Origin: Selaginella moellendorffii
Taxonomy: Eukaryota > Plantae > Lycopodiophyta
DNA: 22,827 bases
Assembly (NCBI RefSeq): GCF_000143415.4
Contig: NW_003314390.1
Coordinates: 1-22,827 of the forward strand
Reading direction: 5' to 3'
Below the pieces are notes generated by a model, which made no database searches, was not told the DNA's origin, and was given only the letters and a program-made list of their open reading frames with translations. Of the stretch, positions 26 to 22,827 are shown in pieces (positions within the stretch are counted from its first letter, which is position 1; the number at the start of each line of letters is the position of its first letter). The position numbers and the translations under genes were made by a program.

Positions 26-441
26 ACTCCACCAGGAGAACTCCATACAACCTTCCCATCCCAATCGGCAACTTCCAGAGCTCCCTGATCGGTCACACGA
101 ACGGTAGCATTTTCTGTCACAGGACTGTCCCGGTTTGCAGCCCAGACGCAGACGCCAGAGTTCGTGTTGTTGCTGGAGCCAAGAACCAAAGCAAAGTAGA
201 ACTCGGCCGAGTTGTGGAATCGAAAGAAAGCCAAGCCAAATCTTCCGCTCTGGCTCAGGAGGGGACTGTCACCTGCTTGGAGCAGCCGATAACTGGCATT
301 GGACTGTGATCCTTGCAGTTCCAGAAGCTGATTGTTGTTCGTTACTTCCCAGCCGTGTGATAGACTGTAGTTCCTGCCGTGCACACGAAAGAGAATTGTC
401 ATCAGCTGAAAGAAAGCGACCAAAAAAATCTTCATAGCCAT
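26..441 (-). pseudogene. 5' portion (signal peptide plus start of the B-lectin domain) of G-type lectin S-receptor-like kinase RLK-A, copy 1; truncated or interrupted at the left
   Basis: Nearly identical to 15058-15473 (offset 15032). Homology stops at position 26, and bases 1-25 are unrelated, giving a stop after ...WSSPGGV. Confidence 0.8.
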
Positions 442-699
442 GAACCATGAAGCAGAATGCGCTAGCTATTTTTGTATCTATAGAACGGGAGCGGTCCATT
501 CACTTGACTCATTCATATTCATACTTCTTCCACTTATTCCAGTCTCGAGTACCAACTGTTACCAAAAGTTCGATTAGTCTTTGCTTGAACAGAAGTCTAG
601 TCTCCATGGCTGCAGTCTAGTCTTCAAGACTTTTCCAAGTCTTGAAAGTAAGGACTTACGTCTCGTATAAGCAGGTGTTCTCAATGCAGAACGGCAGCA
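442..699. promoter_or_regulatory. Putative bidirectional promoter between divergent RLK-A and RLK-B (copy 1, 258 bp)
   Basis: Divergent ATGs at 441(-) and 700(+). W-box-like TTGACT at 504-509. 20 bp longer than copy 2. Confidence 0.55.
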
Positions 700-3152
700 A
701 TGCAAAAGCAAAAGGTTTCACAGGTTGCTAAGGCGTTGTTCCTGGAACTAATAATGCTCCTCACAGTTACTTCTGAAGGGAAGTTGTACACGATACCTGA
801 TAAATGGCGCATTTTCATGAACAACAGTCTCCCAGAATTCCAAGGCGATGGCAGATCCGGGAGTTATCGCCTGGTGAGTGCTCTTCCAAAGGATAACCCT
901 TCTAGCCGGCCAGAATCTCTACGCAGCGACGATGAAAACTTGGGCTTAGCATTCCTCAACTTCAATGGATCAAACAAGTATTACCTGGCACTGATGTTTG
1001 GCACTCGCAACTCTTCCACAGCAGCTCCCGTCTGGCTAGCCAACCGGAACACTCCAGTGTCAGGAAATTCAATGCTCGCTAAAACAGATGGTCGCTTACA
1101 GCTCCTGGATGCAAATGGTTCCGTGGCCAGAGTCCTAACGGCTCTCTCCCTCTGCTATGGAGCCCTCTCACAGCCCAGCACTCAGCATCGCCTCTGCCTG
1201 CTTGCCTCTGGACAGCACCTCTGTCCAGTCCACCAGCGCCCCAGCACTCCAATCTCTTCACACCTCTGCCTGCAGCTTTTGGTGTCTCGCGCCTCTACCC
1301 TACAGGGTGCCCAGCGCTCACCTCTGCTCGGCCAGTGCCTCGCGCCACAGCGCCTCTGGGCTGGTCTCTGCTTGATCACGCCCTAGCGCCTTGCTCAGCT
1401 CGCTAGTGCCGTTATCTTGGCACTCAGTACAGCACAGTGCCAAATCTTGGCACCTCTCAGCCACGTCCAGTGGCTCATCGTCATCCTCGCTAGCCTCCTC
1501 CTTGGCCAGCGCCATCGTCCCTGGATCTGAAGCCCTCAGGGCTCCGATACCATGAAGAGAAGAAGAGCGGAAGCTACGATGGTGGATGACTCCAAGGATA
1601 GTCGTATATATCATAGCTATATATACATGATGAAGAGACACACCTCTAGCCTACACCTGGATCAATGAAGTGGCACTCCTGCCACCTAGGATCATGTCAT
1701 AGAGAGCGTATACCTCAACAGTGGCATGGTCTCCAAGCGAAAGCGTTGCCTATATCGGCATTCAGAATTCCGGGAACTTGCAGCTCTTCGATGAATCTGA
1801 GACCCCGGTATGGAGTTCCTTTGATCGCCCATGGAGCGCACTGATGCCAAACCAGAAGCTAGTAACTGGACAGTCAGTTGTGAGTAACAAAAACGCCTCA
1901 GACCCCAGCGAAGGCTCGTATATCGCAGAGATACAGGCCAGTGGATCAGTCGGATACATGAGCATCGGTTCCAAGAAAAAGCAGCCTTACATGTTGTGGA
2001 GCTTCGTCGGATCACAAATTGGCTCGCCCAGTGTAACCTGCCCAGGATATCGAACTGCTCTTTCATTCACGCCAGCAGGAGAAATGAGCATGGTATACGA
2101 ACCTCTTCGTGTTGGTGGTAACGAACAGCCGTGTGGCTCTCCACTGTCCGGGGAAATATTCCCAGGGAACACCACAATGAGGTATTTCCAGCTTGCCGAT
2201 GATGGGACCATGGTTTCATACAGGCGAGAGTTGGCAAATGGAAGCTGGGAGCTCGATAGCACGAGTCAGTTCTTTCCACCGCCAGCGCCATGCGGGAGCT
2301 ATGGGCTGCTCGAGAAAGGAAAGCAGTGTCAGTGCCTGACCAACGAAGCAAACAACTCTACTACCTCAGCACTTGGAAGTTGTGCCCAGCCAGAATGGTC
2401 TTCTCTTGCAAACTGCAGCTCCAGGTACGAGACCGACTTTGTAACACTCGCAGGTGCATCGTACTTCGCCAACACTTTCAACCCTCCCGATAGAACAGGC
2501 GCTGCAATGCAAGATTGCCTCGAGCAATGCAAATCCACTTGCTCCTGTGCGGCGTTCTTTTTCGACCAGGCGCTCCAGAATTGCTTTTTCATAGAAGACG
2601 TCCTGGGAAGCTTGACGGTAGACTCGAACAAGACTCAGCAACTGTTCGGCTTTCTGAAGTACCAGAATTACTCCAGGTTGCTGCCTGTTGACAACTCATC
2701 GTCAGACACTCCAAAGCTCCTAGTGATCGGAATTACCTCTGGAGGAGCTGCTGTAGCCATTGTAACTTTTGCGTTGCTTTTCACGATCCTGCATCGAAGG
2801 AGGGTCATGCTCGACGAACTAAACAGTTTCCTTAAACGCTCTGGGAAACATAAGCCACATCAACATTGTCAAACTCTATGGCTTCTGTGCCGATGCTTCA
2901 CACAGGCTGCTCGTCTACGAGCTCATGCCCAATGGTTCCTTGGACAGATGGATTTTCTCCGACAACAAGAACAAACTAGACTGGAAACGCTATGGAATGG
3001 TGCTCCTGGAGCTCATTGGCGGCAGGAAAAATCTAGACTGCTCTAAGATGGAGTCGCCACTGAGTTGGTATTTCCCAGCCTGGGCCATGAGCGAAATCCG
3101 GAAAGGGAACACGATGCAAGTGGTGGATCCGAACGTCAAGGACTCGGCAGAC
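700..3152 (+). pseudogene. G-type lectin S-receptor-like kinase RLK-B, copy 1, disrupted
   Basis: Same sequence as 15712-17600, with four lesions. A 593-bp insertion at 1128-1720. A 191-bp deletion with AAC filler at about 2835 that removes the Gly-loop and AVK and causes a frameshift. A join at 2988/2989 from LDWK straight to YGMVLLELIGGRKN, so the catalytic loop, DFG and APE are lost. The kinase C-terminus is lost after VVDPNVKDSAD. Confidence 0.92.
1128..1720 (-). mobile_element. Solo LTR-like insertion (593 bp) with 5-bp target-site duplication GTGGC
   Basis: Absent from copy 2 (TTCCGTGGCATGG). GTGGC at 1123-1127 and 1721-1725. Right end ...TCAACA reads TGTTGA on the minus strand. TATATA tracts at about 1605-1625. 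The other end lacks a clean TG/CA terminus, so orientation is tentative. Confidence 0.8.
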
Positions 3153-3449
3153 ACACCTTTGCTCGTTTTTCTTTCCAATCTCTAGCCACGACATTCCATT
3201 CTTGAAAAGAACCTCCAAATCTGATAAAAAAAAACTAGGAGATTAAAAAAAACACTTTTGTGCATAATTCTTACTTGAGAACGTTCCGAATTTAACAGAT
3301 ACATTAGTGAACCAGCTCGCACAAATTCTCCTGGGATCGCTCGGCTTGTTGGCATGCACCACAGCTCCAAACTTGGCTCCGACCGAATAAGCTTTCCGCA
3401 AAAAAGTCTCTTTTCATGTCAAGCTCAAGTTCTGGGAATCAAAAGCCCA

Positions 3450-3587
3450 CGGTCAGAAAGGTAAGGTTTCCATGCGTACCTAGCATTGTACAGTACATAG
3501 CTGTTGTTCTTTATTACATGCTTGGGTACTCTTGGCAAACTAGTTCCATTCTTCACCACCTTTCCTGTCCAAGACTAAGACCACAAG
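3450..3587 (-). pseudogene. 3' part of the F-box gene split by the copia insertion (copy 1)
   Basis: Reads LVVLVLDRKGGEEWN, in frame with ...DEHEE(L) at about 8112 when the element and one TSD are removed. Homologous to 18610-18784 and 11260-11395. Confidence 0.65.
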
Positions 3588-3673
3588 TGATAATGATCTG
3601 AGGAGACGCTAATAAGAGAGAAAACAGGTACCAGCGTCTGACCTAGCTACCCCGTAAGCCACTAGGACTAACA
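3588..3673 (-). repeat. 3' LTR of copia copy 1 (shortened by deletion)
   Basis: TGTTAG...TTATCA termini. Directly follows the polypurine tract. Homologous to 7993-8107, 18785-18900, 6563-6648 and 21701-21773. Confidence 0.85.
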
Positions 3674-3683
3674 CTCCCACTCT
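3674..3683 (-). other. Polypurine tract (PPT) of copia copy 1
   Basis: Minus-strand AGAGTGGGAG immediately 5' of the LTR start TGTTAG. Same sequence at 18901-18910. Confidence 0.8.
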
Positions 3684-3742
3684 GGCGCAGTAACTCAGAC
3701 TCACTCTCTCATGAGCGAGTGCGCAATAGCTGCGCCAGCACC

Positions 3743-6540
3743 TCACGACCGCTCCTGTTTCTCCTGCAACTGTAAACGGTTGCAATTGAGAGCAAATTTA
3801 TCCTGTGGAAGAGACTTGGTCAGCATATCAGCAAGCTGCTCGGTGGTAGAGCAAAATTGGAGGACAATAATGCCCTGCTGGACCTGCTCTCGGACATAGT
3901 GATAACGGAGCTGAATGTGCTTAGTTCTGTCATGAAACTTTGATGTAGCTGAAAGAGCAATTGCGCTAATGTTGTCACAAAACAACATCGTGGGCTGAAC
4001 AAGAAAATGTCCAAGCTCTGTGAGCAATAAGCGAATCCAGACAGCCTCTTTGCACGCTGAGCACGCAGAAATAGACGACAGAGCTGTGATGCTCTGTTTC
4101 TTGCTCCTCTAAGTCAAAGTTGAGGCACCGAGAAGGCGGATGTAGATTTGCGGGTGTCTTTGTCACCAGCCCAATCTGAGTCGCAGTAGCCGCGCAAGTG
4201 GAATTGCTCATCTGATGTAAGCGCCAAGGATTTGGTACCTTTCAAGTAACAAAAGATGCGCTTATCCGCTGCCCAGTGAGCTAATCCGGGATTTTCAGAA
4301 AATTTCGCCACGACTCCCACTGCATGCGAAAAATCTGGGCGGGTACAAATAACAAGATAAATCAGACTACCAACAGCTGCACAATACGGAATCCTCTCCA
4401 TGGAATTGCTCTCAGCTTCAGTGGTTGGAGACTGAGGTTTAGAAAGCTGAAGATTAAGCTCCATAGGTGTGGAAACTGGAGTACTGTCGTGCATATTAAA
4501 GCGTTTGAGAATTTCGTCCACATAGCGCTGCTGAGAAAGATGAATAGTTCCACGGGACCGTTCTCGAATAATATTAAGACCAAGACAAAACTTAATATCT
4601 CCAAGATCGTCCATCTCAAATTGAGAAGAGAGCTGCTCTTTGATCTTATGTAGAAAAGAAAGACAATTTGCTAGTAAGATCAAATCGTCGACATATAACG
4701 CAATAAGGACCATCATCTTTTCAACATGTTTCTGGTACACGTTCTGATCAGCTGAAAATCCAATAAAAATGAGAAATTGGTCCATTTTGTCGAACCAAGC
4801 TTTAGGAGACTGTTTAAGACCATATAAAGCTTTCTTGAGGCGACAAACCATCCCGGGCTGCTTCTGATAACCCTCTGGTTGCTGGATGAAAATTTCTTCA
4901 GTAAGATCTCCATGCAAAAATGCTGTACGAACATCCATTTGATGCACCTCGAGATCATATTGAGCTGCTAAAGCTAGCAAAGCTCGAATAGAGGCCATGC
5001 GTACCACAGGTGAGTAAATCTCGGTAAAATCAAGGCCTGGGATTTGTGTAAATCCACGAGTCACATACCTCGCTTTAAACCGAACGACCTGATTGGCTGC
5101 ATTCCTCTTAACTCGAAATAGCCATTTTGTTGAGACCACCTGGCGGTCAACTGGCTTTGAAACGAGCGTCCCGTTCTTTTGAAGCGAGAGATACTCAGAA
5201 TCCATAGCAGCTCGCCACTCCACAGCATGAGGACCTGTGAGCGCTTCAGTCACCGTTCTTGGCTCAGGAACATCGTTAGAACCAGCAAAATAAAAACGAC
5301 TTGACCGCGACCTGAAAAAGTGTTGACTCTCGGCAGCATCCCGAGCTCGTTGAGATGGAAAAAGTGGCCGGGCAGAACGAGAATAGCCGACAGGGTCACT
5401 CTGAGAACCAGGCCGCTCAACTTCTGGGACGAGATCTAGCTCTGGTGACTCAGGTGGCGGTAAGGGTGGGGTTGATGTTTGCTCCGGTGGAAGCGACTGC
5501 GGATGAAGACGCGGTGGAGGATTGAGTGGTGGTGGAGGAGGTTGTTGAGCTGCTGGTGGAGCTCCCACTGAAGCTGGAAGCACCGGAACTTCTTCCACAA
5601 GTCGCCAAGTTGAAGGAGTTGGAGTGGAAGTCTCTTTACATGGAAAGATATCTTCAAAAACCTTCACATCACGTGCTGGAAAAAACTGCCAGTCGCAAGC
5701 TTCGGCAATCGAGCAAGGTTCTTGGCATAAGCTAAGCAAGCAACCGAATACTCGAAAGTGTGCAACGGATGGCTTCTTTCCAGTCCATAATTCTTCTGGA
5801 GTGATATTAGAAAGAGTAGATGTTGGAAGACGATTGTAAAGATAAGGAGCGGTAACAATAGCCTCTCCCCAAAAAGATTTTGGACAACCAGCGCCAAGGA
5901 GTATTGCACGAGTAGACTCGACCAACGTGCGGTTCATGCGTTCTGCTGCTCCATTCTGCTATGGCGTCCCTGGAACGGTGAATTGCTGAACAATTCCACA
6001 ATAGTTTTGAAATTTCTTGGAAACATACTCACCGCCATTATCAGACCTCAGGATTTTGAGGGATTTGCCAGTCTGCTGAAAATCCACGAAGAGGGAAAAC
6101 ACTTCACTTTTACGAGACATAACTCTCACTTCCACTCGTCTATAAATGTGACAAAATATGTGTTGCCACCAAGAGAAGCAATTGGCATAGAACCAACATC
6201 AGAGTGAACTAGTCCAAGGAGATCAGCTGCTCGTTCATGAGAATTCTTCGGAAATGGTGCACGATGAAGCTTGCCTTGAATACACGGCTCACAAAAATCC
6301 AAAGGCTCCACTATATCCAGGTCACAAGCTGCAACAAGCTACTGCTTAACAATGCTGATGCACATGGCCAAAGCGTCGATGCCAGAGTTGCATCTTAGAT
6401 TCCTTGGCCATAAATATACGAGGAGGAGGCACTAAAATAGCATCAAGCTTGTAAATATCAGCATACCTGCTACCGTGCATTGCCTTGACCCCATCAAGAG
6501 AAAAAATAATGCCTCGTTGATCTCCATAAAATTGACTAAT
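3743..6540 (-). pseudogene. Copia pol: GAG-pre-integrase, integrase, Pro-rich linker, reverse transcriptase, RNase H (frameshifted)
   Basis: Motifs LWHRRFGH, CEPCIQGK, VHSDV, FVTFID, ERMNRTL, QMDVRTAFLHG, LYGLKQSP, LYVDD, YCDSDWAG, FCDNISAI, FHDRTKHI, EQLADMLTK spread across several frames. Confidence 0.95.
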
Positions 6541-6737
6541 AATCAGACTACAGAGTAGGAGTAGGCTTCTGCCACGTGGCACAGGGTAGTTAGGTGGCCA
6601 CGGCCATCCTATTTTCTCTCTTATTAGCGTCTCCTCAGATCATTATCATCAGATTGTAGATCCTGATGGTTCACCATGCTAGGAGAGACTTGTGCTTACT
6701 GATCAACAACTGCCGACTACACAGAGTACGGCGGAAC

Positions 6738-7338
6738 ATGGCGAGCAGTAGTACTGCTGCTAGTGTTTTGGAGCAGCGTTTAATCCTTTGTACAAGGAAG
6801 ATTTTGCAAATTGGGCTGCCCTCCTGAAGGTTGTTTTCTTGTGTGATAATTGCGATGGGATTGTCACAGGCAAAGAACCTGAACCAGCCCAAGGTGCTCC
6901 CGAATTAGCAGATTGGAAGCGAGCCCTATCTACAATGGATATTAATCTAGGCAAATAGTACATTCATCTTCTTGATCTTGATAATAATGCTTCCACAAAT
7001 TGGACCAATCTAACCCAGTTTCTTGGTGCTCAAATGATTGAACGTATGGTCACGTTGAAAGGTGAGTTCTTCACTTTAAAGGTGGATCCCCAATTGTCTG
7101 TCAAGAAATTTATCAAAGACATTCTCTACTATGAGAAGCGCCTTCAAGACGCAAAGCAGCCTCTGACTACTGTGGACAAGCAAGCAGCCCTGATCAATCG
7201 CATTCTTGATATCAAGGAGTATAAGAGTCTTCACACAACATTTCAGAATCTTCAAGGCCAGCTCACTTTTGAAGCAATGTGCTCATCTCTCAAGGAAGAA
7301 GAACGCCAACAGCAGAAATTGAAGACCAAGACTAAATC
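6738..7338 (+). pseudogene. Copia gag N-terminal part (UBN2/Retrotran_gag_2-like), inverted copy, frameshifted
   Basis: ATG at 6738: MASSSTAASVLEQRL..DFANWAALLKVVF..GIVTGKEPEP, then FFTLKVDPQLSVKKFIKDI..RLQDAK. No zinc knuckle or protease follows. Confidence 0.75.
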
Positions 7339-7666
7339 CAAAAGTGAGCTGGCCTTGAAGATTCTGAAACATTGTGCGAAGACTCTCATACTCCTCGATA
7401 TCAAGAATGCCATTGATCAGAGCTGCTCACTTGTCCACATTAGTCAAAGGCTGCTTTGTGTCTTGAAGGTGCTTCTCATAGTAGAGAGTGTCATTGATAA
7501 ATTTCTGGACAGGCAATTAGGGATCCATCTTTAAAGTGGAGAACTCACCCTTGAACGTGACCACATGTTCAACCATTTAAGCACCAAGAAACTGGGTCAG
7601 ATTGGTCCAATTTGTGGGAGCATGTTATTAAGATCAAGAAGATGAATGTACTGCTCGCCTAGACCA

Positions 7667-7746
7667 ATACCTATTGTAGATAGGGCTCGCTTGTTGTGCA
7701 GCTTCCATACCTATTGTAGATAGGGCTTGCTTGTTGCGCAGCTTCC
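7667..7746. repeat. 40-bp direct tandem duplication within the right arm
   Basis: ATACCTATTGTAGATAGGGCT(C/T)GCTTGTTG(T/C)GCAGCTTCC occurs twice, with 2 mismatches. Confidence 0.9.
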
Positions 7747-7992
7747 AGTCTGCTAATTCAGGAGCATCTTGGGCTAGTTAAGATTCTTTGCCTGCGACAA
7801 TCCAATCACAATTATCACACAAGAAAACGACATAGCCCAATTTGCAAAATCTCCCTTGTACAAAGGGATTAAACGCTACTCCAATGCACTGGCAGCAGTA
7901 CTATTGCTCGCCATGTTCTGCCGTACTCTATGTAGTCAGCGGTTGTTGATCAGAAAGCACATGTCTCTCCTAGCATGACCATCAGGATCTAC

Positions 7993-8107
7993 ATCTGAGG
8001 AGACGCTAATAAGAGAGAAAACAGGGTACATGGTCATGGCCGTGGCCACCAGCGTCTGACCTAACTCGTGCCACGTGGCAGAAGCCTGATTCTGACTAGG
8101 ACTAACA
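7993..8107 (-). repeat. 5' LTR of copia copy 1 (3' end and PBS deleted)
   Basis: Starts TGTTAGTCCTAGTCAG at 8107, contains TGCCACGTGGCA, and is flanked by the TSD-like ATAAG. Confidence 0.85.
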
Positions 8108-8815
8108 ATAAGCTCCTCATGCTCATCTGTTATATCTCTTTGAGTAAACATCAATTTAATATCGCCTCCAACTTCCAGCATGTGTGAATAAGCAAGTTTA
8201 GGCATCCTATTGTCCCAAGCATACAGCCATGTCAAGTTCTTGACATTTGCCATATCATTCTCTAACAACACAAGTGATGCTTGATACAATTGTGATAATG
8301 CACTCCTTTGATGCAAACCGTGTTCATAGACCACATCCTCATGGTCTGACGGAGAGGGTATAACCAAATGCCCACCTTTGAGTCAAAATGAAATGGCTTT
8401 AGAACATCATACCCTTGCTTGTGTGTAAGGTATCAGCATTTGAGTGCGAGCTATTGAGGGTTGAATTGATGGAATCTCCTCCCATTGCTTGGTCACTGGG
8501 TTTCCAACCATGAAAGGCCTTTTGGAATATGGAAACCACGAGAAGATATTTCCCTGACTACTTGCGACCCATGCTGGGCAAACCAGTTCTCAATAGATAT
8601 TTCTTTCCCCATCAGACTCCATGCTGGATACTTCCAGAAGCGTCTGAGCTCGTTGAATGAAGTATACCCTTGGTGCAGAAACAGGAACTTGGTGTGGGTT
8701 TTGTTCATCCATTGTTCCGTGAAGTATGGATGCCGTCGCAAATGAAACCATTCCTTACACACCGGCTGCAGCCGCAAAACATCTTCGGCTGGTAGAAAAG
8801 ACAGTATATGAGCAT
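8108..8815 (-). pseudogene. F-box protein (F-box plus associated beta-propeller-type domain), 5' part, frameshifted
   Basis: AHILSFLPAEDVLRLQPVCKEWFHLRRHPYF is the second half of an F-box. In another frame follow VASSQGNIF and FMVGNPVTKQWEEIP, typical of plant F-box proteins. The first half of the F-box is replaced by WDR82 sequence. Confidence 0.8.
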
Positions 8816-9085
8816 TCCATCTCGACTGGGCTTGAGCGTGAATCCATGCATCTGAGAGGAAGCTCTCGGTAGATTTGATGAACGAGAGAGAATCATACCT
8901 TCTTCCCAGGGTACGCGTTCAGCAAATAGAGAAGCCTAATTTTGCCACTAGCGACTTCCACGGTATCAACACCCACGAGACGGAGTTTAAAACACTCGAT
9001 GCATCGGAGAAATCAATCACGTCATACCTTATCAAAAGACCTTACGTCCCTACGTCAAACAGCTTGATTTCTCAACAGCAAATAC
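8816..9085 (-). pseudogene. Degraded WDR82/Swd2 fragment (second copy)
   Basis: Homologous to about 11740-12085, with internal deletions (MHGFTLKPSRD exon, DTVEVAS, IKLFD). Confidence 0.75.
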
Positions 9086-9221
9086 TAGGCCTTGCTGAAG
9101 ACGGTCTGAGAAAGTTCCGAAAGAAAGGAAAGAGGCTTTTCTTACTTCGGAAACGTTGCTGCGCAGATGCCACAACCGGACAGTGTGATCCAATTACATG
9201 AACGAATCGTTCTTCGGAGAC

Positions 9222-9563
9222 ACTTCACGACCAAGCACTCCATTTCCTTTTCGTAGAAGACGTCCTGGGAAGATTCGTCGAAGAGTCAGCAACCAGAATT
9301 ACTCCAGGTTGCTGCCTGTTGACAACTCATCGTCAGACACTCTAAAGCGCGGCACAGTACGAAGGAATGGATGAACCTAGTGGTGAGGAAACTCAGCACA
9401 CAGCATGGACAAAAGGAGTTTGTAACAGAAGTCTCGGCTCTGGGAACATAAGCCGCTTCCGATGCTTCAGAAGGCTGCTCGTCTACGACCTCATGTCCAA
9501 TGGTTCCTTGGAACAGATGGATTTTTTTCACTAGCAAGAACAAACTGGACTTGAAACTTCGAT
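9222..9563 (+). pseudogene. Third, heavily deleted relic of RLK-B (PAN-to-kinase region)
   Basis: Colinear patches match about 16970-17596 (GAAGACGTCCTGGGAAG; CCAGAATTACTCCAGGTT; CTCAGCACACAGCATGGACAAAAGGAGTTTGTAACAGAAGTCTCGGCTCTGGGAA; CCAATGGTTCCTTGGA). Confidence 0.88.
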
Positions 9564-9565
9564 AG

Positions 9566-10155
9566 GACAAGCTTTACTTTATCACGATCACAAAGAACAA
9601 CACCAGATCGCTCAAGTGTGTCAACGTGTGGGATTCACACGGCAAGGTGGCGACTTTGGCAACGTGGACGAGTCTTCCCATGGGCTTGCATCAAGAAACA
9701 TACAATGGATGCCGGAATAATAACTCCTCACTTGTTTACTGCGCGGGTAAGTTTCTTCTTTTTCTTTTGTGATTTCTACATGTTTGTGATTACTGAGTTT
9801 CAGGAAAGCTGGTGCTTGCAAACTTGATTCCAGACAGTGTCGATACACAAACCCAAGTTGGTTTTGTCTATCTGGATGAAGCATCCAGACAGTGGCAACC
9901 CTTGGCAACTATGCCTAGAGAGATTATGCCGGCAGAGCTTAAAAAGTTGGGCTGCGAGCAGGCAATATGCATGAGTGGAGTTTGATAGTGGCGGGAGGGG
10001 AGACCGAGATCACCTTGTTCATAACTCACTTAACTTTCGGTTGGGGTTGCATTTACAGTAAAGAAACCGGTATCTGGCGACCAGCTTGTGGCCTAAGGTC
10101 CGAAGGTGGTATGCTGTATCCTTTCAAGCCATCATTCCATCCAGTCTCCATTTAG
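9566..10155 (+). pseudogene. C-terminal fragment of an F-box/kelch-like protein with one intron (9747-9803)
   Basis: Spliced translation DKLYFIT...SSLVYCA/GKLVLANL...YLDEASRQWQPLATMP. After a frameshift: CIYSKETGIWRP...YPFKPSFHP*. The GTAAG...TTTCAG intron preserves frame. No 5' part is present. Confidence 0.6.
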
Positions 10156-11259
10156 TTAGAATCATCATACTCCCATTTAAAGGTGTCATGTAATTTAAGA
10201 ATGAGTATGGGAGGTGAAGAAAATTTATAAAAACTTTTTTTCCAAACGAATATCCTAAATAAATATTTATTTTTTAATACAACAATTTTTTTTTCCAAGT
10301 TTTATTGTGAGAACATTCAACACAACAGCTCCCCAAATTCACGAAGGTAATTGCCCAGATATTTCATGTCATTAAACAAAACTCCACGACCTTGCAAAAG
10401 TTCTCTTACAACCATCTTGCGACGGGCAGCCTCCAATTCATCTTCAAACGGATCTGATCGTAAGGTTCTGGCTTGGCATAGAGCAAGTTCATTTCTTATC
10501 CCCAGGTTTGTTCTTACCACCTTTTCTTGAAGAATGGATTTAAATCCAGAGCGACACTCACACTGGGCTGAAATTTGGTATTGATTTCTGTTAGAAATAT
10601 TATCTATCAAAACACACCCGATTATCAATCTCTACCAGGTAGGTACATGGCTTTTTATTTTTCTGGTACTGGTCACTTTTTCCTTCCATATCAGCCAGCT
10701 GGAGTTGTGGCTATAGAACGTATTGTGCTGAGAGAAATCTGCAGAATGCCAATGAAGTTATACAGCGTTTGCCATGGACAGTTCGATCGATAAGCTTGGG
10801 AAAGCTTGGGAAATACATTTTTCTATGGGGATGGAGTGGTTTTGCGCTGCTCTTTGTGTTTGCGTTGGAGAAAAAATTTTATGGGATGCCTCTGGTGGAA
10901 CCAAAGAGGATCTCTGCCAAAGAAGGAGATTTCGGAAGAGTCATTAGTGAGAGACATTATCAAACTCAATATCAGCCCAGCAGCACCATTGCTGGCATTT
11001 GAGTGCTCCTAAACCAAAACCAGAGCCTGGTTTAGGCTCCACCACGGTAACCATCCCGACAAGACCACCTTCGGGCACGAATTTTATCGGAAGCACAGCT
11101 TGAGAAGCAAGGGTCTTGATTTATTCTGGCGTGCTGATCTTGGTAGCATTTGTTCGATTGGCCTTAAGAATTTGAGGTCCGAACAAATCAAGAGACCTCT
11201 GGAAGTTTGGCAGTGCTCATATTATTGTTTCATCGTGTGTGAGATGGCAAAGTATACAA

Positions 11260-11395
11260 CACTCATATTCGTCGTGCTTTACTACATGCTTGGGTACTCT
11301 TGACAAACTGGATACTTTCTTCGGGTTACGTTCTTCACCACCTTTCCTATCTAAGACTAATAAGACTACAAGCTCTCTTTGATTAACATACCTGA
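11260..11395 (-). pseudogene. F-box 3' relic paralogous to the copia target site (empty site)
   Basis: ELVVLLVLDRKGGEERNPKKVSSL. A single ACAAG at 11368-11372 with no element. Confidence 0.7.
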
Positions 11396-11406
11396 CAAAC
11401 ATCCTT

Positions 11407-12661
11407 TTACAGTTTGGACACGTCGGGTATCCAAAACGCTAAAACATATGAGGCAGTCGCAAACATGAGCCTTCGCGGAGCCCATTTCACCACGGCAGGA
11501 ATTCCAGCGTTGTTCGTCCAGCACGCTACCTGGAATTCAATCAAAATAAGTCTTTTTTTTCCTCTTTTTTAGCACGAGAATTTCTCTCACCTCTGCACCG
11601 CTTAAGGAGCTCCATATTCTCAAACTTCCATCCCCGGAGCCTGAGATTCAATACTTATAGCTATCAGGAACTGATACAAACGAATGTTACCTGAGATAAC
11701 ATAGCGACCGTCTGGACTGAACGATGCTTCCAACGTTTCTCCGTCTCGACTGGGCTTGAGCGTGAATCCATGCATCTGGGAAGGAGCTCTCGGTATAGAC
11801 TTAACGAGCGAGAGAGAAGTTTACCTTCTTTCCAGAGTAGGCATCAAGCAAATACACCCGGCTGTTTGTTGTGGAGAGAAGCATCATTTTACCATCGTTG
11901 CTAAACTTCATGCCAGCGACTTCCGCGGTATCACCACCCACGAGAAAAGTGTCAAAAGGTCCCTGAAGCATTCGTTCGGACTTTCATAAAATTATTGGAG
12001 AATCAATCACATCTTACCTTGTCGAAAGACCTTCCGTCAAACAGCTTGATTGCTCCGCCTTCCATGGCAACAGCAAATACCAGGCCTTGTTGATCATACG
12101 CCACAGACAGTCTTCCCCGGACTCTAAGAAGACCCTGAAATCATGGAAATGCTCTAGCCAAAGTTCTGGAAGAAAACGCAAGAAAAGAGTTTCGTTCTTT
12201 GGAGACATACATAGTGATACAACCCTGTGAGCAAAAGAAATAAAATAAGCATGGCCTTGGGTTGCTCCAAAGACTCACCTTTGCGTGTGTCCTCTGAAAT
12301 ATCGTAGAAATCTATTATCATACAACGATAGATACCGCAAGGACTCTGGAAACAAAGAAAGAACCTCAAAGACACGAAAAACCGTTCTCTCTTACCATCA
12401 CTTCCATTGCTGGAGGAAAAAATCACAGCATTGGTATGATGCGTGAAACATATGTGATCCACGCCATATCTTGCACTGTAGAGAGTCTTCATGGGCCTGG
12501 ATGGAGCAAAGAAAAGGAAACTTGAAACCTCCCAAGAACTCGGGGGAAAAAATCACCTACGTCGCAGTGGCAGTATCGTAGAGCCGAATGGACGCGTCCT
12601 CCGCGGCAGTCACCACGAGATCCTCCGTGCGATGAAAATCCAAGGAGCTGATCTTCCCCCA
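11407..12661 (-). pseudogene. WDR82: WD40 protein WDR82/Swd2 (COMPASS/Set1 component; APRF1/S2La-like), multi-exon, probably non-functional
   Basis: Exons ~12661-12561 (GKISSLDFHRTEDLVVTAAEDASIRLYD), 12496-12396 (YGVDHICFTHH), 12345-12279 (SLRYLSLYDNRFLRYFRGH), 12224-~12188 (VVSLCMSPKNET, truncated, no donor), 12134-12018 (VAYDQQGLVFAVAMEGGAIKLFD), 11962-11825 (GPFDTFLVGGDTAEV..FSNDGK), 11775-11691 (EASFSPDGRYVISG), 11640-11591 (SGDGSLRIW), 11529-11407 (KWAPRRLMFATAS..FWIP*). Short GT-AG introns. First exon not found. Confidence 0.88.
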
Positions 12662-12935: not shown

Positions 12936-15473
12936 TTATCTGGGACCAGACGGCTGGTGTGCTACCATGGCCACACTGACGCTACCACCAAGATGGTTAG
13001 TCGAAGAGAACCGAAGAACTCCCGCAGAACTCAACGCAAACCGGAAGAAGAGAGGCGGCTCCAAAATCTCCTTTCGACCTTCGAGCATCTGGACGACTGT
13101 ATCCATCGGGGGTCTTTGGCTGGGATTATCCTGGATGCACCACAGAGCTACCTGGAGCATACTTTTCACCTCGTCCTCGTCCACACTATCTCGGATCCTT
13201 GTATCCACGACTTTGAGAAACTCTCTCTTGGAGACTCGAGCTACGACCCAGGCCGGGAAGTACCACCACAAAGCTTGTTCCCCCTCGTCCATTGGAGCTT
13301 CACGACAGTCTTCTCCACCATGGCCGCCAAGCTTGGACAAGTTCCTTCGTCCACCTATGAGCTCCAGCAGCACCATACCATAGCTGTAGACGTCGCATTT
13401 CTTCGTGGCTACCGAATGTAAGAGCCACTCCGGGGCGAGATATCCTGGAGTACCTCGAACATCAGTCACGGTCTGGCTTACATCCCGAGTCTTGAGCAGC
13501 TTCGCCATGCCGAAATCGGAGAGCTTGGGACGAAACTTATCGTCTAGAAGGACGTTCTCGGGCTTGATGTCGAGATGGATAATCAGCTGCCGCGATTCCT
13601 CGTGCAAGTAAGCCAGGCCTTGAGCTACTCCCAAGGCAATATCGCGGCGGCTCTGCCAGTCCAAGCATCGATCTTCGAACAGCCACTTATCCAAGGATCC
13701 ATTCACCACGTACTCGTAGACGAGCATGAGCTGGTTCTTCTCGGAGCAAAAGCCATAGAGCTGGACAACGTTGTGGTGGCTTATCCGTCCCAGCGAGGCC
13801 ATCTCCGCCAGAAATCCCCTGTCACTCTGGTTCCGGTTCTCCAGGCGCTTGACCGCCACCTTTCTCCCGTCCGCCAGAGTCCCTTCATAGACGGTTCCAA
13901 AGCCGCCTTTACCAAGGCTCGAAGCGAAGTTCCCAGTCGCCACCTCCAGCTCCTTGTATGTATACTTCTGAGCCGAGCCTTGCAGTGCCAGAGCCAAAGC
14001 ACGCTCAACTTTGTCAAGCCTGTGCTTCCAGATCATCAGCACGACCAAGCCGAGAGCTGATAGCAGGACCACGCTCGCAGCAATGCTGACTCCAAGCAAA
14101 ACGGTGCGATCCTTGGGCTTCTTCCGCACGAAAAGCTCTGCGTTTTGCAGCTTGAGGAAGCCATCGAAGTTGGGATCCCTGGTGAGGCCTCCATACATCC
14201 GGTCGACGAAGAAACAGGTGCTCGACTGCTTGTTGTAGAAGAGTGCGGTGCAGGAGCAATTCGCTAGGCACAAGCTCCAGCACTCGCTCAAGGTGGAAAC
14301 TCTGTCGGCCTTGGTGTAATTGTTGGAGAAGTAGCCGGCTCCACTCACGTTGAGAAAGTGGTGGTTCTCGGCCTCGACTTCGTGGTTGCAAACGAGAGGT
14401 ATGCTGCTCGGACTTGGGCAAGTTTGCTCCTGATGGCCACTCTGGTCTTGGACTATACAGCTGCACTGAGCGTTCCCAGAGCAAACGCTGTTCGATTCGC
14501 ATGCCATCGGGAGGCAACCTCCAAGTCTGTTCCTCATGAACGGCGGACCCTGTTCCCACGAAGCTCGTCCGGAGTTGTAGGTGTAAGGAACCAGCTTCCC
14601 ATCGATTTCAAGTTTGAGATACTGCCGGTCATCGCTGCTGTTCCCGAGTACTGCTGTGAGAGGAGCGCTGCAGAGCTGGGAAGGGTTGCTCGTCGATGGC
14701 TGGTACGATAGTATCAGTTGGCCAGCGGAATACTCGAGCTCTGTGTGATAAGTCGGGCATGGTGCGTTGATGGAAGTCTCGTCCATTGGCAAGTTTCCAT
14801 TGTATAAGTTCCAAACCAAGTAAGGCTGTCTTGTGTCCCGGTTGAGGAAAAAGATGAGACCGCTCGGCTCAACTTCCATCTTGATGTTCCCGCTAGCAAG
14901 ACTTGATGAATTGGCGCTGCTGATAAGTCTCTGCTTAGTTACCATGACTTGTCCTTCTAAAAGGATATCTGTAGGATGGTCGAAGCTCTGCCAGGAGATC
15001 CCACCCGTGGAGTTGTAGAGGACAAAGTTCCCAGTGTCTCGAAGCTCCATCTCAGAAACTCCACCAGGAGAACTCCATACAACCTTCCCATCCCAATCGG
15101 CAACTTCCAGAGCTCCCTGACCGGTCACACGAACGGTAGCATTTTCTGTCACAGGACAGTCCCGGTTTGCAGCCCAGACGCAGACGCCAGAGTTCGTGTT
15201 GTTGCTGGAGCCAAGAACCAAAGCAAAGTAGAACTCGGCCGAGTTGTGGAATCGAAAGAAAGACAAGCCAAATCTTCCGCTCTGGCTCATGAGAGGACTG
15301 TCACCTGCTCGGAGCAGCCGATAACTGGCATTGGCCTGTGATCCTTGCAATTCCAGAAGCTGATTGTTGTTCGTTACTTCCCAGCCGTGTGATAGACTGT
15401 AGTTCCTGCCGTGCACACGAAAGAGAATTGTCATCAGCTGAAAGAAAGCGACCAAAAAAATCTTCATAGCCAT
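12936..15473 (-). CDS. G-type lectin S-receptor-like serine/threonine kinase (SD2-5-like, non-RD), RLK-A, 845 aa, intronless
   Basis: N-terminal hydrophobic signal; B-lectin (VWAANRDCPV, LRDTGNFVL, WQSFDHPTD); EGF-like Cys cluster; PAN (CWSLCLANCSCTALFY); TM segment; kinase GKGGFG, VAVK, HLDIKPEN, DFG, GTPGYLAPE, DVYSYG, RP. Confidence 0.96.
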   Translation of the reverse strand: MAMKIFLVAFFQLMTILFRVHGRNYSLSHGWEVTNNNQLLELQGSQANASYRLLRAGDSPLMSQSGRFGLSFFRFHNSAEFYFALVLGSSNNTNSGVCVWAANRDCPVTENATVRVTGQGALEVADWDGKVVWSSPGGVSEMELRDTGNFVLYNSTGGISWQSFDHPTDILLEGQVMVTKQRLISSANSSSLASGNIKMEVEPSGLIFFLNRDTRQPYLVWNLYNGNLPMDETSINAPCPTYHTELEYSAGQLILSYQPSTSNPSQLCSAPLTAVLGNSSDDRQYLKLEIDGKLVPYTYNSGRASWEQGPPFMRNRLGGCLPMACESNSVCSGNAQCSCIVQDQSGHQEQTCPSPSSIPLVCNHEVEAENHHFLNVSGAGYFSNNYTKADRVSTLSECWSLCLANCSCTALFYNKQSSTCFFVDRMYGGLTRDPNFDGFLKLQNAELFVRKKPKDRTVLLGVSIAASVVLLSALGLVVLMIWKHRLDKVERALALALQGSAQKYTYKELEVATGNFASSLGKGGFGTVYEGTLADGRKVAVKRLENRNQSDRGFLAEMASLGRISHHNVVQLYGFCSEKNQLMLVYEYVVNGSLDKWLFEDRCLDWQSRRDIALGVAQGLAYLHEESRQLIIHLDIKPENVLLDDKFRPKLSDFGMAKLLKTRDVSQTVTDVRGTPGYLAPEWLLHSVATKKCDVYSYGMVLLELIGGRRNLSKLGGHGGEDCREAPMDEGEQALWWYFPAWVVARVSKREFLKVVDTRIRDSVDEDEVKSMLQVALWCIQDNPSQRPPMDTVVQMLEGRKEILEPPLFFRFALSSAGVLRFSSTNHLGGSVSVAMVAHQPSGPR

Positions 15474-15711
15474 GAACCATGAAGCAGAATGCGCTAGCTA
15501 TTTTTGTATCTATAGAACGGGAGCGGTCCATTCACTTGACTCATTCATATTCATACTTCTTCCACTTATTCCAGTCTCGAGTACCAACTGTTACCGAAAG
15601 TTTGATTAGTCTTTGCTTGAAAAGAAGTCTAGTCTTCAAGACTTTTCCAAGTCTTGAAAGTAAGGACTTACGTCTCGTATAAGCAGGTGTTCTCAATGCA
15701 GAACGGCAGCA
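15474..15711. promoter_or_regulatory. Putative bidirectional promoter (238 bp) between RLK-A and RLK-B
   Basis: Divergent start codons at 15473(-) and 15712(+). TTGACT W-box-like motif at 15536-15541. Confidence 0.6.
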
Positions 15712-17600
15712 ATGCAAAAGCAAAAGGTTTCACAGGTTGCTAAGGCGTTGTTCCTGGAACTAATAATGCTCCTCACAGTTACTTCTGAAGGGAAGTTGTA
15801 CACGATACCTGATAAATGGCGCATTTTCATGAACAACAGTCTCCCAGAATTCCAAGGCGGTGGCAGATCCGGGAGTTATCGCCTGGTGAGTGCTCTTCCA
15901 AAGGATAACCCTTCTAGCCGGCCAGAATCTCTACGCAGCGACGATGAAAACTTGGGCTTAGCATTCCTCAACTTCAATGGATCAAACAAGTATTACCTGG
16001 CACTGATGTTTGGCACTCGCAACTCTTCCACAGCAGCTCCCGTCTGGATAGCCAACCGGAACGCTCCAGTGTCAGGAAATTCAATGCTCGCTAAAACAGG
16101 TGGTCGCTTACAGCTCCTGGATGCAAATGGTTCCGTGGCATGGTCTCCAAACGAAAGCGTTGCCTATATCGGCATTCAGAATTCCGGGAACTTGCAGCTC
16201 TTCGATGAATCTGAGACCCCGGTATGGAGTTCCTTTGATCGCCCATGGAGCGCACTGATGCCAAACCAGAAGCTAGTAACTGGACAGTCAGTTGTGAGTA
16301 ACAAAAACGCCTCAGACCCCAGCGAAGGCTCGTATATCGCAGAGATACAGGCCAGTGGATCAGTCGGATACATGAGCATCGGTTCCAAGAAAAAGCAGCC
16401 TTACATGTTGTGGAGCTTCGTCGGATCACAAATTGGCTCGCCCAGTGTAACCTGCCCAGGATTTCGAACTGCTCTTTCATTCACGCCAGCAGGAGAAATG
16501 AGCATGGTATACGAACCTATTCGTGTTGGTGGTAACGAACAGCCGTGTGGCTCTCCACTGTCCGGGGAAATATTCCCAGGGAACACCACAATGAGGTATT
16601 TCCAGCTTGCCGATGATGGGACCATGGTTTCATACAGGCGAGAGTTGGCAAATGGAAGCTGGGAGCTCGATAGCACGAGTCAGTTCTTTCCACCGCCAGC
16701 GCCATGCGGGAGCTATGGGCTGCTCGAGAAAGGAAAGCAGTGTCAGTGCCTGACCAACGAAGCAAACAACTCTACTACCTCAGCACTTGGAAGTTGTGCC
16801 CAGCCAGAATGGTCTTCTCTTGCAAACTGCAGCTCCAGGTACGAGACCGACTTTGTAACACTCGCAGGTGCATCGTACTTCGCCAACACTTTCAACCCTC
16901 CCGATAGAACAGGCGCTGCAATGCAAGATTGCCTCGAGCAATGCAAATCCACTTGCTCCTGTGCGGCGTTCTTTTTCGACCAGGCGCTCCAGAATTGCTT
17001 TTTCATAGAAGACGTCCTGGGAAGCTTGACGGTAGACTCGAACAAGACTCAGCAACTGTTCGGCTTTCTGAAGTACCAGAATTACTCCAGGTTAGTGCCT
17101 GTTGACAACTCATCGTCAGACACTCCAAAGCTCCTAGTGATCGGAATTACCTCTGCAGGAGCTGCTGTAGCCATTGTAACTTTTGCGTTGCTTTTCACGA
17201 TCCTGCATCGAAGGAGGGTCATGCTCGACGAACTAAACAGTTTCCTTACCGGTGTACAAGCTTCGCCTTACAGGTTCTCGTTCAGCAGCCTATACTCTGC
17301 AACAAAAGGATTCACAAAGGTTTTAGGAAGCGGAGGTTGCGGCACAGTGTACGAAGGAATGCTTCACAACGGGATGAAGCTGGCAGTGAAGAAACTCAGC
17401 ACACAGCATGGACAAAAGGAGTTTGTAACAGAAGTCTCGGCTCTGGGAAACATAAGCCACATCAACATTGTCAAACTCTATGGCTTCTGTGCCGATGCTT
17501 CACACAGGCTGCTCGTCTACGAGCTCATGCCCAATGGTTCCTTGGACAGATGGATTTTCTCCGACAACAAGGACAAACTGGACTGGAAACTTCGACACAG
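15712..17600 (+). CDS. G-type lectin S-receptor-like kinase (SD2-5-like) RLK-B; 3' end lies in the assembly gap
   Basis: Uninterrupted ORF: signal peptide, B-lectin (VWIANRNAPV, IQNSGNLQL, WSSFDRP), PAN (CLEQCKSTCSCAAFFF), TM segment, kinase N-lobe (GSGGCGTVYEG, LAVKKL, LLVYELMPNGSLDRW). Confidence 0.9.
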
Positions 17601-18212
17601 NNNNNNNNNNNNNNNNNNNNNNNNNNNNNNNNNNNNNNNNNNNNNNNNNNNNNNNNNNNNNNNNNNNNNNNNNNNNNNNNNNNNNNNNNNNNNNNNNNNN
17701 NNNNNNNNNNNNNNNNNNNNNNNNNNNNNNNNNNNNNNNNNNNNNNNNNNNNNNNNNNNNNNNNNNNNNNNNNNNNNNNNNNNNNNNNNNNNNNNNNNNN
17801 NNNNNNNNNNNNNNNNNNNNNNNNNNNNNNNNNNNNNNNNNNNNNNNNNNNNNNNNNNNNNNNNNNNNNNNNNNNNNNNNNNNNNNNNNNNNNNNNNNNN
17901 NNNNNNNNNNNNNNNNNNNNNNNNNNNNNNNNNNNNNNNNNNNNNNNNNNNNNNNNNNNNNNNNNNNNNNNNNNNNNNNNNNNNNNNNNNNNNNNNNNNN
18001 NNNNNNNNNNNNNNNNNNNNNNNNNNNNNNNNNNNNNNNNNNNNNNNNNNNNNNNNNNNNNNNNNNNNNNNNNNNNNNNNNNNNNNNNNNNNNNNNNNNN
18101 NNNNNNNNNNNNNNNNNNNNNNNNNNNNNNNNNNNNNNNNNNNNNNNNNNNNNNNNNNNNNNNNNNNNNNNNNNNNNNNNNNNNNNNNNNNNNNNNNNNN
18201 NNNNNNNNNNNN
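17601..18212. other. Assembly gap (612 N)
   Basis: Run of N. Confidence 1.
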
Positions 18213-18609
18213 GACATTCACATACATCACCAAAAACCCTTTAGCCCATGAGCCCTAAAATTCAAATACTAATTGAGTTTTTGCATCTTTTACTAAGGAA
18301 ATTAGTCAGGACAGAAAAAGCGTCTAAGTGCAAGTTGCCTTTGCTGGTTTTTTTTTCCAATCTCTAGCCACGACATTCCAGTCTTGAAAAGAACCTCCAA
18401 ATCTGATAAAAAAAACTAGGAGATTAAAAAAAACACTTTTGTGCATAACTCTTATTTGAGAACGTTCCGAATTTAACAGATACATTAGTGAACCAGCTCG
18501 CACAAATTCTCCTGGGATCGCTCGGCTTGTTGGCATGCAAACTTGGCTCCAACCGAATAAGATTTCCGCAAAAAAGTCTCTTTCATGTCAAGCTCAAGTT
18601 CTGGGAATC

Positions 18610-18784
18610 AAAAACAACAATCCATTTGCCCACGGTCAGAAAGGTAAGGTTTCCATGCGTACCTAGCATTGTACAGTACATAGCTGTTGTTCTTTATTAC
18701 ATGCTTGGGTACTCTTGGCAAACTGGATACTTTCTTCCAGTTCCATTCTTCACCACCTTTCCTGTCCAAGACTAAAACCACAAG
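18610..18784 (-). pseudogene. 3' part of the copia-interrupted F-box gene (copy 2)
   Basis: LVVLVLDRKGGEEWNWKKVSSLPRVPKHV. ACAAG at 18780-18784 abuts the LTR. Confidence 0.65.
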
Positions 18785-21700: not shown

Positions 21701-22827
21701 AGGCTTCTGCCACGTGGCCCGGCCATGACCATGTCCATTTCTCTCTTGTTAGCGTCTCCTCATATCATTATCATGGTATCAGATTGTAGATCCAATGGTT
21801 CACCATGCTAGGAGAGACCTGCCCTTTCTGATCAACAACCGCTGTACAGCAGAACATGGCGAGCTGCCAGAGCAGCATTTAATCCTTTTGTACAAGGGAG
21901 ATTTTGCAAATTGGGCTGCCCTCCTAAAGGTCGTTTTCTTGTGTGATAATTGCGATGGGATTGTCGCAGGCAAAGAACCTGAACTAGCCCAAGGTGCTCC
22001 TGAATTAGTAGACTGGAAGCTGCGCAACAAGCAAGCCCTATCTACAATAGGCAAGCAGTACATTCGTCTTCTTGATCTTGATAACAATGCTCCCATAAAT
22101 TGGACCAATCTAACCCAGTTTCTTGGTGCTCAAATGGTTGAACATGTGGTCATGTTGAAGGGTGAGTTCTTCACTTTAAAGATGGATCCCTAATTGCCTG
22201 TCAAGAAGTTTATCAACAACATTCTCTACTATGAGTAGCACCTTCAAGATGCAAATTAGCCTTTGACAAATGTGGACAAGCAAGCAGCCCTGATCAATGG
22301 CATTCTTGATATCGTCTTCGCACAACGTTTCAGAATCTTCAAGGCCAGCTCACTTCTGGATTTAGTCTTGGTCTTCAATTTCTGCTGTTGGCATTCTTCT
22401 TCCTTGAGAGATGAGCACATTGCTTCAAAAGTGAGTTGGCCTTGAAGATTCTGAAATGTTGTGTGAAGACTCTCATACTCAATATCAAGAATGTCATTGA
22501 TCAGGGCTGCTCGCTTGTCCACATTAGTCAGAGGCTGCAAAGGTGCTTCTCATAGTAGAGAATGTTGTTGATAAACTTCTTGACAGGCAATTGGGGATCC
22601 ATCTTTAAAGTGAAGAACTTGCCCTTCAACATGACCACATATTCAACCATTTCAGCACCAAGAAATTGGGTTAGATTGGTCCAATTTATGGGAGCATTTA
22701 TTCAGATTAAGACGACGAATGTATTGCTCACCTATACCCCTACCCATTGAAGATAGGGCTTGCTTGTTGCGCACCTTCTACTCTGCTAGTTCAGGAACAC
22801 CTTCGGGGCCGTTCCGGTTCTTTGCCT
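21701..22827. repeat. Inverted repeat copy 2 (left arm about 21701-22358, spacer 22359-22425, right arm 22426 to window end)
   Basis: CAGAATCTTCAAGGCCAGCTCACTTCTG pairs with CAAAAGTGAGTTGGCCTTGAAGATTCTG. The spacer is the reverse complement of the copy-1 spacer. Confidence 0.95.
21774..21783 (+). other. Primer-binding site (initiator tRNA-Met type) in the inverted arm
   Basis: TGGTATCAGA immediately after the LTR end ...CATTATCA (21773). Deleted at the equivalent sites in copy 1. Confidence 0.85.

Follow-up and report, generated by a model that had tools for sequence, protein, structure and literature searches.

A Ty1/copia retrotransposon of Selaginella moellendorffii carries part of itself a second time in inverted orientation, with its long terminal repeat (LTR), its leader and the N-terminal part of its gag gene forming two arms around a spacer of 67 nt. 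The element occupies positions 3588-8107 (minus strand) of the window analysed here, the whole stretch of 22,827 nt from positions 1 to 22,827 of contig NW_003314390.1, and it is a defective, dead member of its family. In place of the gag C-terminus, the zinc knuckle and the protease it has an inverted copy that runs from the polypurine tract (PPT) through the LTR, the primer binding site (PBS) and the leader into gag. The window consists of two units of a ~15-kb tandem duplication (unit 1, ~26 to ~15030; unit 2, ~15058 to the window end), and both contain the fold-back. That the structure is real we regard as practically certain. The species assignment agrees with a receptor kinase neighbouring the element in the window, which is 98% identical to an NCBI protein of S. 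moellendorffii.

Architecture of the element and its fold-back

Repeat finding and gapped self-BLAST placed the inverted arms at 6649-7271 and 7339-7998, with more outer blocks out to 6563-6582 and 8068-8087. The outer arm (R1, 7339-8087, minus strand, gag-sense) comprises the LTR from nt 21, the leader and the N-terminal part of gag, whose ATG is at 7914-7912. The inner, inverted arm (L1, 6563-7271, plus strand, gag-sense) repeats this order with the LTR from nt 21 (6563-6648), a PBS remnant, the leader and the N-terminal part of gag with its ATG at 6738. The gag of the inner arm contains one frameshift and one stop, and its Pfam match to Retrotran_gag_2 covers profile positions 82-169 of 172 and stops at the spacer. 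The 67-nt spacer, the loop of the predicted hairpin, lies between the arms at 7272-7338 (plus strand, gag-sense in unit 1; ...EERQQQKLKTKTKS). In unit 1 the arms are 88.7% identical over 698 aligned columns. At the other end of the inner arm, the junction with pol is at 6550/6551.

When 6563-8107 was folded with RNAfold, 643 pairs formed about a single centre at 7305, and the longest uninterrupted helices were 73 bp. The minimum free energy was -1144 kcal/mol compared to -429 ± 4 kcal/mol for shuffled sequences, and both strands of the region were predicted to form one long hairpin. A preliminary description, made from the letters of the window alone, had proposed a stem of about 700 bp closed by a 67-nt loop; the outermost pair of the RNAfold structure, 8087-6563, falls on exactly the coordinates that it gave. 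The same description read gag as far as ...KTKTKS before the switch into the inverted copy. That order is correct for the second copy, the only one in which the spacer continues the outer, 5'-LTR-linked arm, and incorrect for the first, where the spacer is gag-sense on the plus strand and continues the inner arm. A 40-nt tandem duplication at 7667-7747 (2 copies, 95% identical) is present in the outer arm only and appears as a bulge in the hairpin.

The borders of the composite element (3588-8107, minus strand) were established from its LTR termini, its target site duplication (TSD), its Pfam domains and a paralogous empty site. The LTR starts with TGTTAG and ends with TTATCA, and a complete LTR is short (~130 nt). 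The TSD is 5 bp with one mismatch, CTTAT (8108-8112) and CTTGT (3583-3587) on the minus strand, corresponding to ATAAG at 8108-8112 and ACAAG at 3583-3587 on the plus strand; the uninterrupted paralogous site at ~11368-11372 has the pentamer once. The outer 5' LTR (7993-8107, minus strand), delimited by alignment of the LTR copies and by motif positions, starts with TGTTAG and has lost its final ~14-20 nt together with the start of the PBS. At the other end (3588-3684, minus strand), the PPT (3674-3684) is followed by a 3' LTR (3588-3673) with internal deletions that removed, among other parts, the G-box. The PPT, CAGAGTGGGAG, is found at 3674-3684 and again at 18901-18911. The sequence TGGTATCAGA, which from the usual Copia PBS we take to be a PBS complementary to initiator tRNA-Met, is intact at 21774-21783 in the inner arm of unit 2 and partly deleted in the other arms. 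A perfect palindromic G-box, GCCACGTGGC, is present in the 5' LTR (8070-8079) and in both inner LTRs (6571-6580 and 21709-21718), and is deleted or replaced in both 3' LTRs (3588-3673 and 18785-18900).

Pfam recognised Copia gag (Retrotran_gag_2, PF14223), GAG-pre-integrase, integrase (rve) and RVT_2, arranged in the order typical of Copia. Neither a CX2CX4HX4C zinc knuckle nor a D[ST]G[AS] protease motif was present in any of the six frames of 3588-8107. In full-length relatives the knuckle lies at residues ~220-240 and the protease motif at ~275-305, and tblastn with these relatives showed that pol homology to full-length Copia polyproteins restarts at residue ~370-405 of ~1300. The remainder of pol (3685-6550, minus strand) extends from the protease end (SLIISQF) through GAG-pre-integrase, integrase and RVT_2 to RNase H, and several frameshifts break its frame. 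The earlier reading of 3588-8107 as a TSD-bounded minus-strand element that had lost the Gag zinc knuckle and protease in an inverted duplication plus deletion agrees with the termini, the empty site, the domains, the repeats and the motif search alike. An open reading frame (ORF) of 607 aa (4114-5937, minus strand; integrase end to RVT_2) persists in the dead element. Rfam gave no match anywhere in the window.

The second copy, which the preliminary description had also announced, was found on the minus strand from ~18785 to beyond 22827, with a fold-back centre at 22392. It contains a 3' LTR (18785-18900), a PPT (18901-18911) and pol, followed by a PPT-like motif (21686-21697), the inner arm (~21698-22358), the spacer (22359-22425), which is flipped, and an outer arm that starts at 22426 and is cut off by the window end. 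A third copy is present on scaffold GL377598.1, with arms at 9694-10411 and 10479-11299 and the spacer at 10412-10478. This scaffold is colinear with the window and its flanks are 99.5-100% identical; the sole database relative of an ORF that spans the loop (7034-7534) is SELMODRAFT_417155, which is the same locus on GL377598.1. The three copies differ by 3-14% in the arms, mostly by singletons, and have both junctions and the 67-nt spacer in common. These comparisons show that the fold-back is inherited and that it is older than both the 15-kb tandem duplication and the split of the two assembled scaffolds.

A false palindrome assembled from chimeric reads or a collapsed repeat can for practical purposes be dismissed. 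The source assembly does have gaps, one of them a run of N at 17601-18212 in unit 2, and on GL377570.1, a related scaffold, the expected position of the fold-back falls in N gaps. The fold-back is nevertheless not an artefact of assembly because it occurs also in the second tandem unit and in the separately assembled GL377598.1; three copies that are 3-14% apart share two junctions and a spacer, and mixing of reads cannot create singleton differences, which predominate.

Several observations were made on these related stretches. The run at 17601-18212 (612 N) has a counterpart of only ~167 nt in unit 1 (2989-3155) and in GL377598.1 (6102-6268), and looks like a sized assembly gap. On GL377570.1 (4068938-4089822), a third related locus, the kinase end and the 3' part of the element occur twice; it is uninformative on the fold-back as gaps of 560 and 4086 N lie exactly at the expected position. 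In GL377598.1 the outer arm of the first fold-back carries a 61-nt insertion (10542-10610) that is not in the window. The second unit of that scaffold has undergone a deletion of ~6.8 kb with one end inside the outer arm (19190-19660). Only the outer ~415 nt of this arm remain (LTR, leader and gag start), with DNA from upstream of the kinase on one side and the F-box-like gene on the other, and an extra 49-nt deletion has taken the start of the LTR.

Origin of the inner arm and inversion of the spacer

Directly before the inner arm stands CAGAGT(A/G)GGAGT, composed of the PPT of the element itself and the first base of the LTR (12-mer CAGAGTGGGAGT). In unit 1 this sequence, CAGAGTAGGAGT, occupies 6551-6562 on the plus strand, adjoins the outer end of the inner arm and has one mismatch to the element's own junction of PPT and 3' LTR. 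With one mismatch allowed, the window has 4 matches to the 12-mer where 0.11 would be expected, and the sites are only the two 3'-LTR junctions and the outer ends of the two inner arms. In GL377598.1 the arm copy is exact (9686-9697). In all three copies the PPT and first LTR base adjoin the inner arm, and the 5' border of the PPT is where homology to the 3' region of the element ends. DNA of an F-box-like gene lies before the chromosomal 5' LTR, and the PPT before the inner arm; the integrated outer arm therefore did not serve as template for the inner arm, which was copied from a product of reverse transcription ordered PPT-LTR-PBS-gag.

We propose that the fold-back arose by snap-back of the nascent plus strand during reverse transcription, the likeliest route and the simplest in that it needs one event, a reading that we hold with about even confidence. 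The plus strand, primed at the PPT, would have been extended past the PBS into gag, where it would have snapped back on itself 67 nt upstream and left the 67-nt loop. It would then have copied itself as far as the 5' end of its own PPT primer and gone back to the minus-strand template where the protease ends, immediately ahead of SLIISQF (junction 6550/6551). The product would have integrated normally; the intact outer LTR ends and the target duplication fit this. Two observations count against this scheme. The inner LTR lacks its first ~19 nt, and a reading of the 12-mer as protease codons (LLPLC) is also possible, despite a match far above chance.

A less likely origin, to which we give a low but appreciable probability, is the antisense insertion of another cDNA from the same family into a resident copy, within its protease region. 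Such a cDNA would have had an aberrant left end that still carried the PPT and would have been joined by end-joining, and everything between the two gag genes would later have been deleted. Antisense self-nested insertions of the Copia element EVADE (EVD) are on record (PMC11624286), a PPT beside the inner LTR also suits a cDNA end with an unremoved primer, and the loss of the first ~19 nt suits end-joining. An integrase-mediated nested insertion would have an inner LTR complete to its TG end and flanked by a target duplication of its own, the second flank of which the later deletion would have removed; the LTR present is shortened and has the PPT before it. The later deletion must in addition have stopped in the two gag genes at positions that agree to within 67 nt, and a second pol or 3' LTR has left no trace, whereas one snap-back accounts for both the symmetry and the PPT. 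A one-LTR circle or a tandem junction is a further rival for the origin.

It is very unlikely that the fold-back formed on the chromosome after integration, through a break or stalled fork at which hairpin repair or template switching copied the resident outer arm backwards. Break repair commonly yields fold-back inversions with short spacers, and the TSD shows that the outer ends were integrated normally; a backward copy of the outer arm would however enter F-box DNA, and the inner arm ends in the element's own PPT instead. Inversion circles formed by autointegration (PMC7197481) were rejected, as they predict an inverted 3' LTR and RNase H beside gag, unlike the arrangement observed.

All four arms of the two units lie at much the same distance from one another (86-91% identity). 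Between the arms of unit 1 there are 64 fixed differences, 51 of them within the arms and 13 in an unalignable junction (6542-6562). Ten of the 51 have the look of changes older than the split of the units (4 direct, 6 flipped). The small number of such differences and the near equidistance of the arms indicate that the fold-back arose shortly before the tandem duplication.

The two units carry the spacer in opposite orientations. Positions 7272-7338 and 22359-22425 match only as reverse complements (66 of 67 nt), and the wider segments 7217-7383 and 22314-22480 are 97% complementary. GL377598.1 has the orientation of unit 1, its spacer at 10412-10478 being identical to 7272-7338 at 66 of 67 positions in the same orientation. 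This looks like flip-flop recombination between the inverted arms, of which such a flip is the expected product, and on the snap-back model the original orientation would be that of unit 2. A clean recombination tract was sought for the flip and rejected; site patterns were mixed and crossover points could not be placed.

Divergence of the arms and a possible silencing role

Divergence between copies is concentrated in the arms. Unit 1 and unit 2 differ by ~9-12% in the arms, 2.5% in pol and 1 of 67 nt in the spacer; the window and GL377598.1 differ by ~3% in the arms, ~0.7% in pol and ~0.4% in the flanks. Substitutions were ~4 times more common in the arms than in the spacer or pol and 6-8 times more common than in the host flanks; the contrast, drawn between 6563-8107 on one side and 3700-6550 and 8108-12190 on the other and at the equivalent positions of GL377598.1, appeared both between units and between window and scaffold. 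Polarised CG transitions were found at 8 of 100 lineage-sites in the arms compared to 6 of 406 in pol (p = 0.002), and all polarised changes together were about twice as frequent in the arms (p = 0.002). The slower change of pol is not due to selection, as pN/pS between copies was 0.6-3, which is neutral and indicates no constraint. An excess of change that is confined to the stem and spares the loop and pol fits small interfering RNAs (siRNAs) that derive from the stem and may direct cytosine methylation in cis. Mutagenesis specific to inverted repeats is an alternative cause of the excess.

Hairpins from nested or inverted transposon copies are an accepted trigger of silencing (PMC11624286; PMC2725412). 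Here, a transcript crossing the region would fold into ~640 bp of imperfect double-stranded RNA. Such a transcript might come from read-through of the F-box-like gene or from either of the two facing LTRs, each of which has a G-box. The double-stranded RNA would be a substrate for Dicer that does not need RNA-dependent RNA polymerase (RDR), and the siRNAs produced would be directed against LTR and gag. Whether the hairpin yields, or once yielded, siRNAs against LTR and gag we judge to be an evenly balanced question. A 'killer' role today, in which other members of the family would be silenced in trans, is improbable. We attach a similarly low probability to the complete proposal, that an integrated and fixed Copia snap-back product serves, or formerly served, as an RDR-independent siRNA hairpin shutting down its own family in a lycophyte reported to be without DCL2, phased siRNAs and a 24-nt siRNA peak. 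Were it true, defective copies made by the elements themselves would have been a main path by which early vascular plants acquired immunity to retrotransposons.

A number of results weigh against a silencing role. Transition mismatches between the arms had no G:U bias in either transcript orientation (33:26, 40:34 and 9:16); therefore arm pairing has not been preserved by selection. The observed/expected ratio of CpG was 0.36-0.46 in the arms compared to 0.74-0.80 in pol, and a column-by-column count using majority states (ratio 0.26) suggests that this depletion is older than the divergence of the arms. We had considered CpG depletion as a footprint of hairpin-directed methylation and dropped it for that reason. 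Among 1.84 billion representatives and in a set of 5.8 billion proteins, protein sets from which repeats are often omitted, no relative of the 607-aa pol ORF exceeded 46-49% amino acid identity, so live targets are not in evidence. In protein databases the loop-spanning ORF matched only the copy of this locus on the other scaffold and no other gag relative. Exact database look-ups of the kinase, P0151, P0153, the loop ORF and the pol ORF gave no match. Finally, S. moellendorffii has been reported to be without a clear 24-nt siRNA peak, CHH methylation, DCL2 and phased siRNAs (PMC5569507).

The same results give weight to a rival interpretation, that of an inert relic: a rearranged, dead element that is drifting, has no useful transcription or consequential siRNAs and never controlled other copies. 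We consider this a serious candidate that falls somewhat short of an even chance. Close relatives were not found, both gag and pol carry frameshifts and stops, arm pairing is not preserved and the small-RNA profile of the species is atypical; moreover, the other scaffold lost most of its unit-2 copy by deletion with no obvious consequence. Drift of one dead element, on the other hand, does not predict substitutions that are concentrated in the arms and spare the 67-nt spacer and pol, and the structure lies on the sense strand of a gene, between two facing LTRs.

Genomic setting and comparison with known systems

The gene at the 5' end of the element is F-box-like and may be a pseudogene. It occupies 8108-8918 on the minus strand, the strand of the element, as the preliminary description had noted in calling it a host F-box gene; its pieces lie in three frames and its Pfam scores are just below the cut-offs (F-box-like, 23.7 bits against 24.3; F-box beta-propeller, 21 bits against 25). 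The element inserted in the 3' end of this gene, 14 codons ahead of the stop of the last reading frame. Each unit of the tandem duplication contains a receptor kinase, a lectin-kinase pseudogene, the F-box-like gene split by the Copia element and pieces of a WD40 gene, and the gene parts of the two segments (26-8107 and 15058-22827) are 97-100% identical. A G-type lectin receptor kinase at 12936-15473 (minus strand), the one with 98% identity to the S. moellendorffii protein, is intact and intronless and encodes 845 aa. Truncated or frameshifted lectin and kinase copies in each unit (22-441, 700-3200 and 15700-18500) give the region the character of a small, unstable receptor-kinase cluster.

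By what means plants first detect an active LTR retrotransposon is a matter of continuing debate. One favoured trigger is the hairpin formed by inverted or nested copies, and natural examples are few. The locus described here is a clean, old and twice-duplicated natural example from a lycophyte, with an origin that is legible from the primer remnant at the end of the arm. It bears on whether the stem of a retrotransposon hairpin is singled out for silencing in a plant whose RNA-silencing toolkit is unusual. Should there be no such silencing, the locus would still document well how a fold-back forms, how its spacer flips and how its arms decay.

The proposed mechanism has precedents in hairpin self-priming by reverse transcriptase and in the copy-back defective genomes of RNA viruses, in which a growing strand turns back and uses itself as template up to that template's end, leaving a short loop. 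The inner arm in Selaginella resembles these products in ending at a primer, the PPT. They are by-products formed in vitro or in infected cells, whereas the Selaginella product appears to have been completed, integrated and inherited.

Endogenous pararetroviruses of Solanum are likewise integrated reverse-transcribing elements with small inverted conformations, for which heritable siRNA hairpins against relatives have been proposed (PMC9868043). They differ in that matching siRNA peaks are reported, in belonging to the Caulimoviridae rather than to Copia, and in that their formation was not tied to a primer remnant (PMC9868043). A Copia case is EVD in rdr6 lines of Arabidopsis, where LTRs that face each other have been suggested to initiate transcriptional silencing through LTR hairpins or convergent transcripts (PMC11624286). 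The EVD arrangement is a recent, complete nested insertion in an experimental line, with LTRs ~2-2.5 kb apart, and its siRNA output was untested in that study (PMC11624286). By comparison, the Selaginella fold-back is compact: its spacer measures 67 nt, a second pol is lacking, the arm ends in a PPT and its fixation in a natural genome is old.

In architecture the locus matches Mu killer (Muk), which arose in maize from a truncated MuDR by inverted duplication and for which a hairpin transcript, siRNAs and heritable silencing in trans have been demonstrated (Slotkin et al. 2005, as cited in PMC3440606, PMC2725412 and PMC11624286). Both loci are inverted duplications of a truncated transposon that include a promoter-bearing terminal repeat and the start of the coding region. 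In both, a flanking gene could read through, and the hairpin would not need RNA-dependent RNA polymerase. The two differ in that MuDR is a DNA transposon and the Selaginella element an LTR retrotransposon, the arms of which are only 86-89% identical and whose silencing role would be a candidate one. The Selaginella locus is thus a natural addition to transposon inverted duplications like Mu killer, and one in which the origin is unusually readable.

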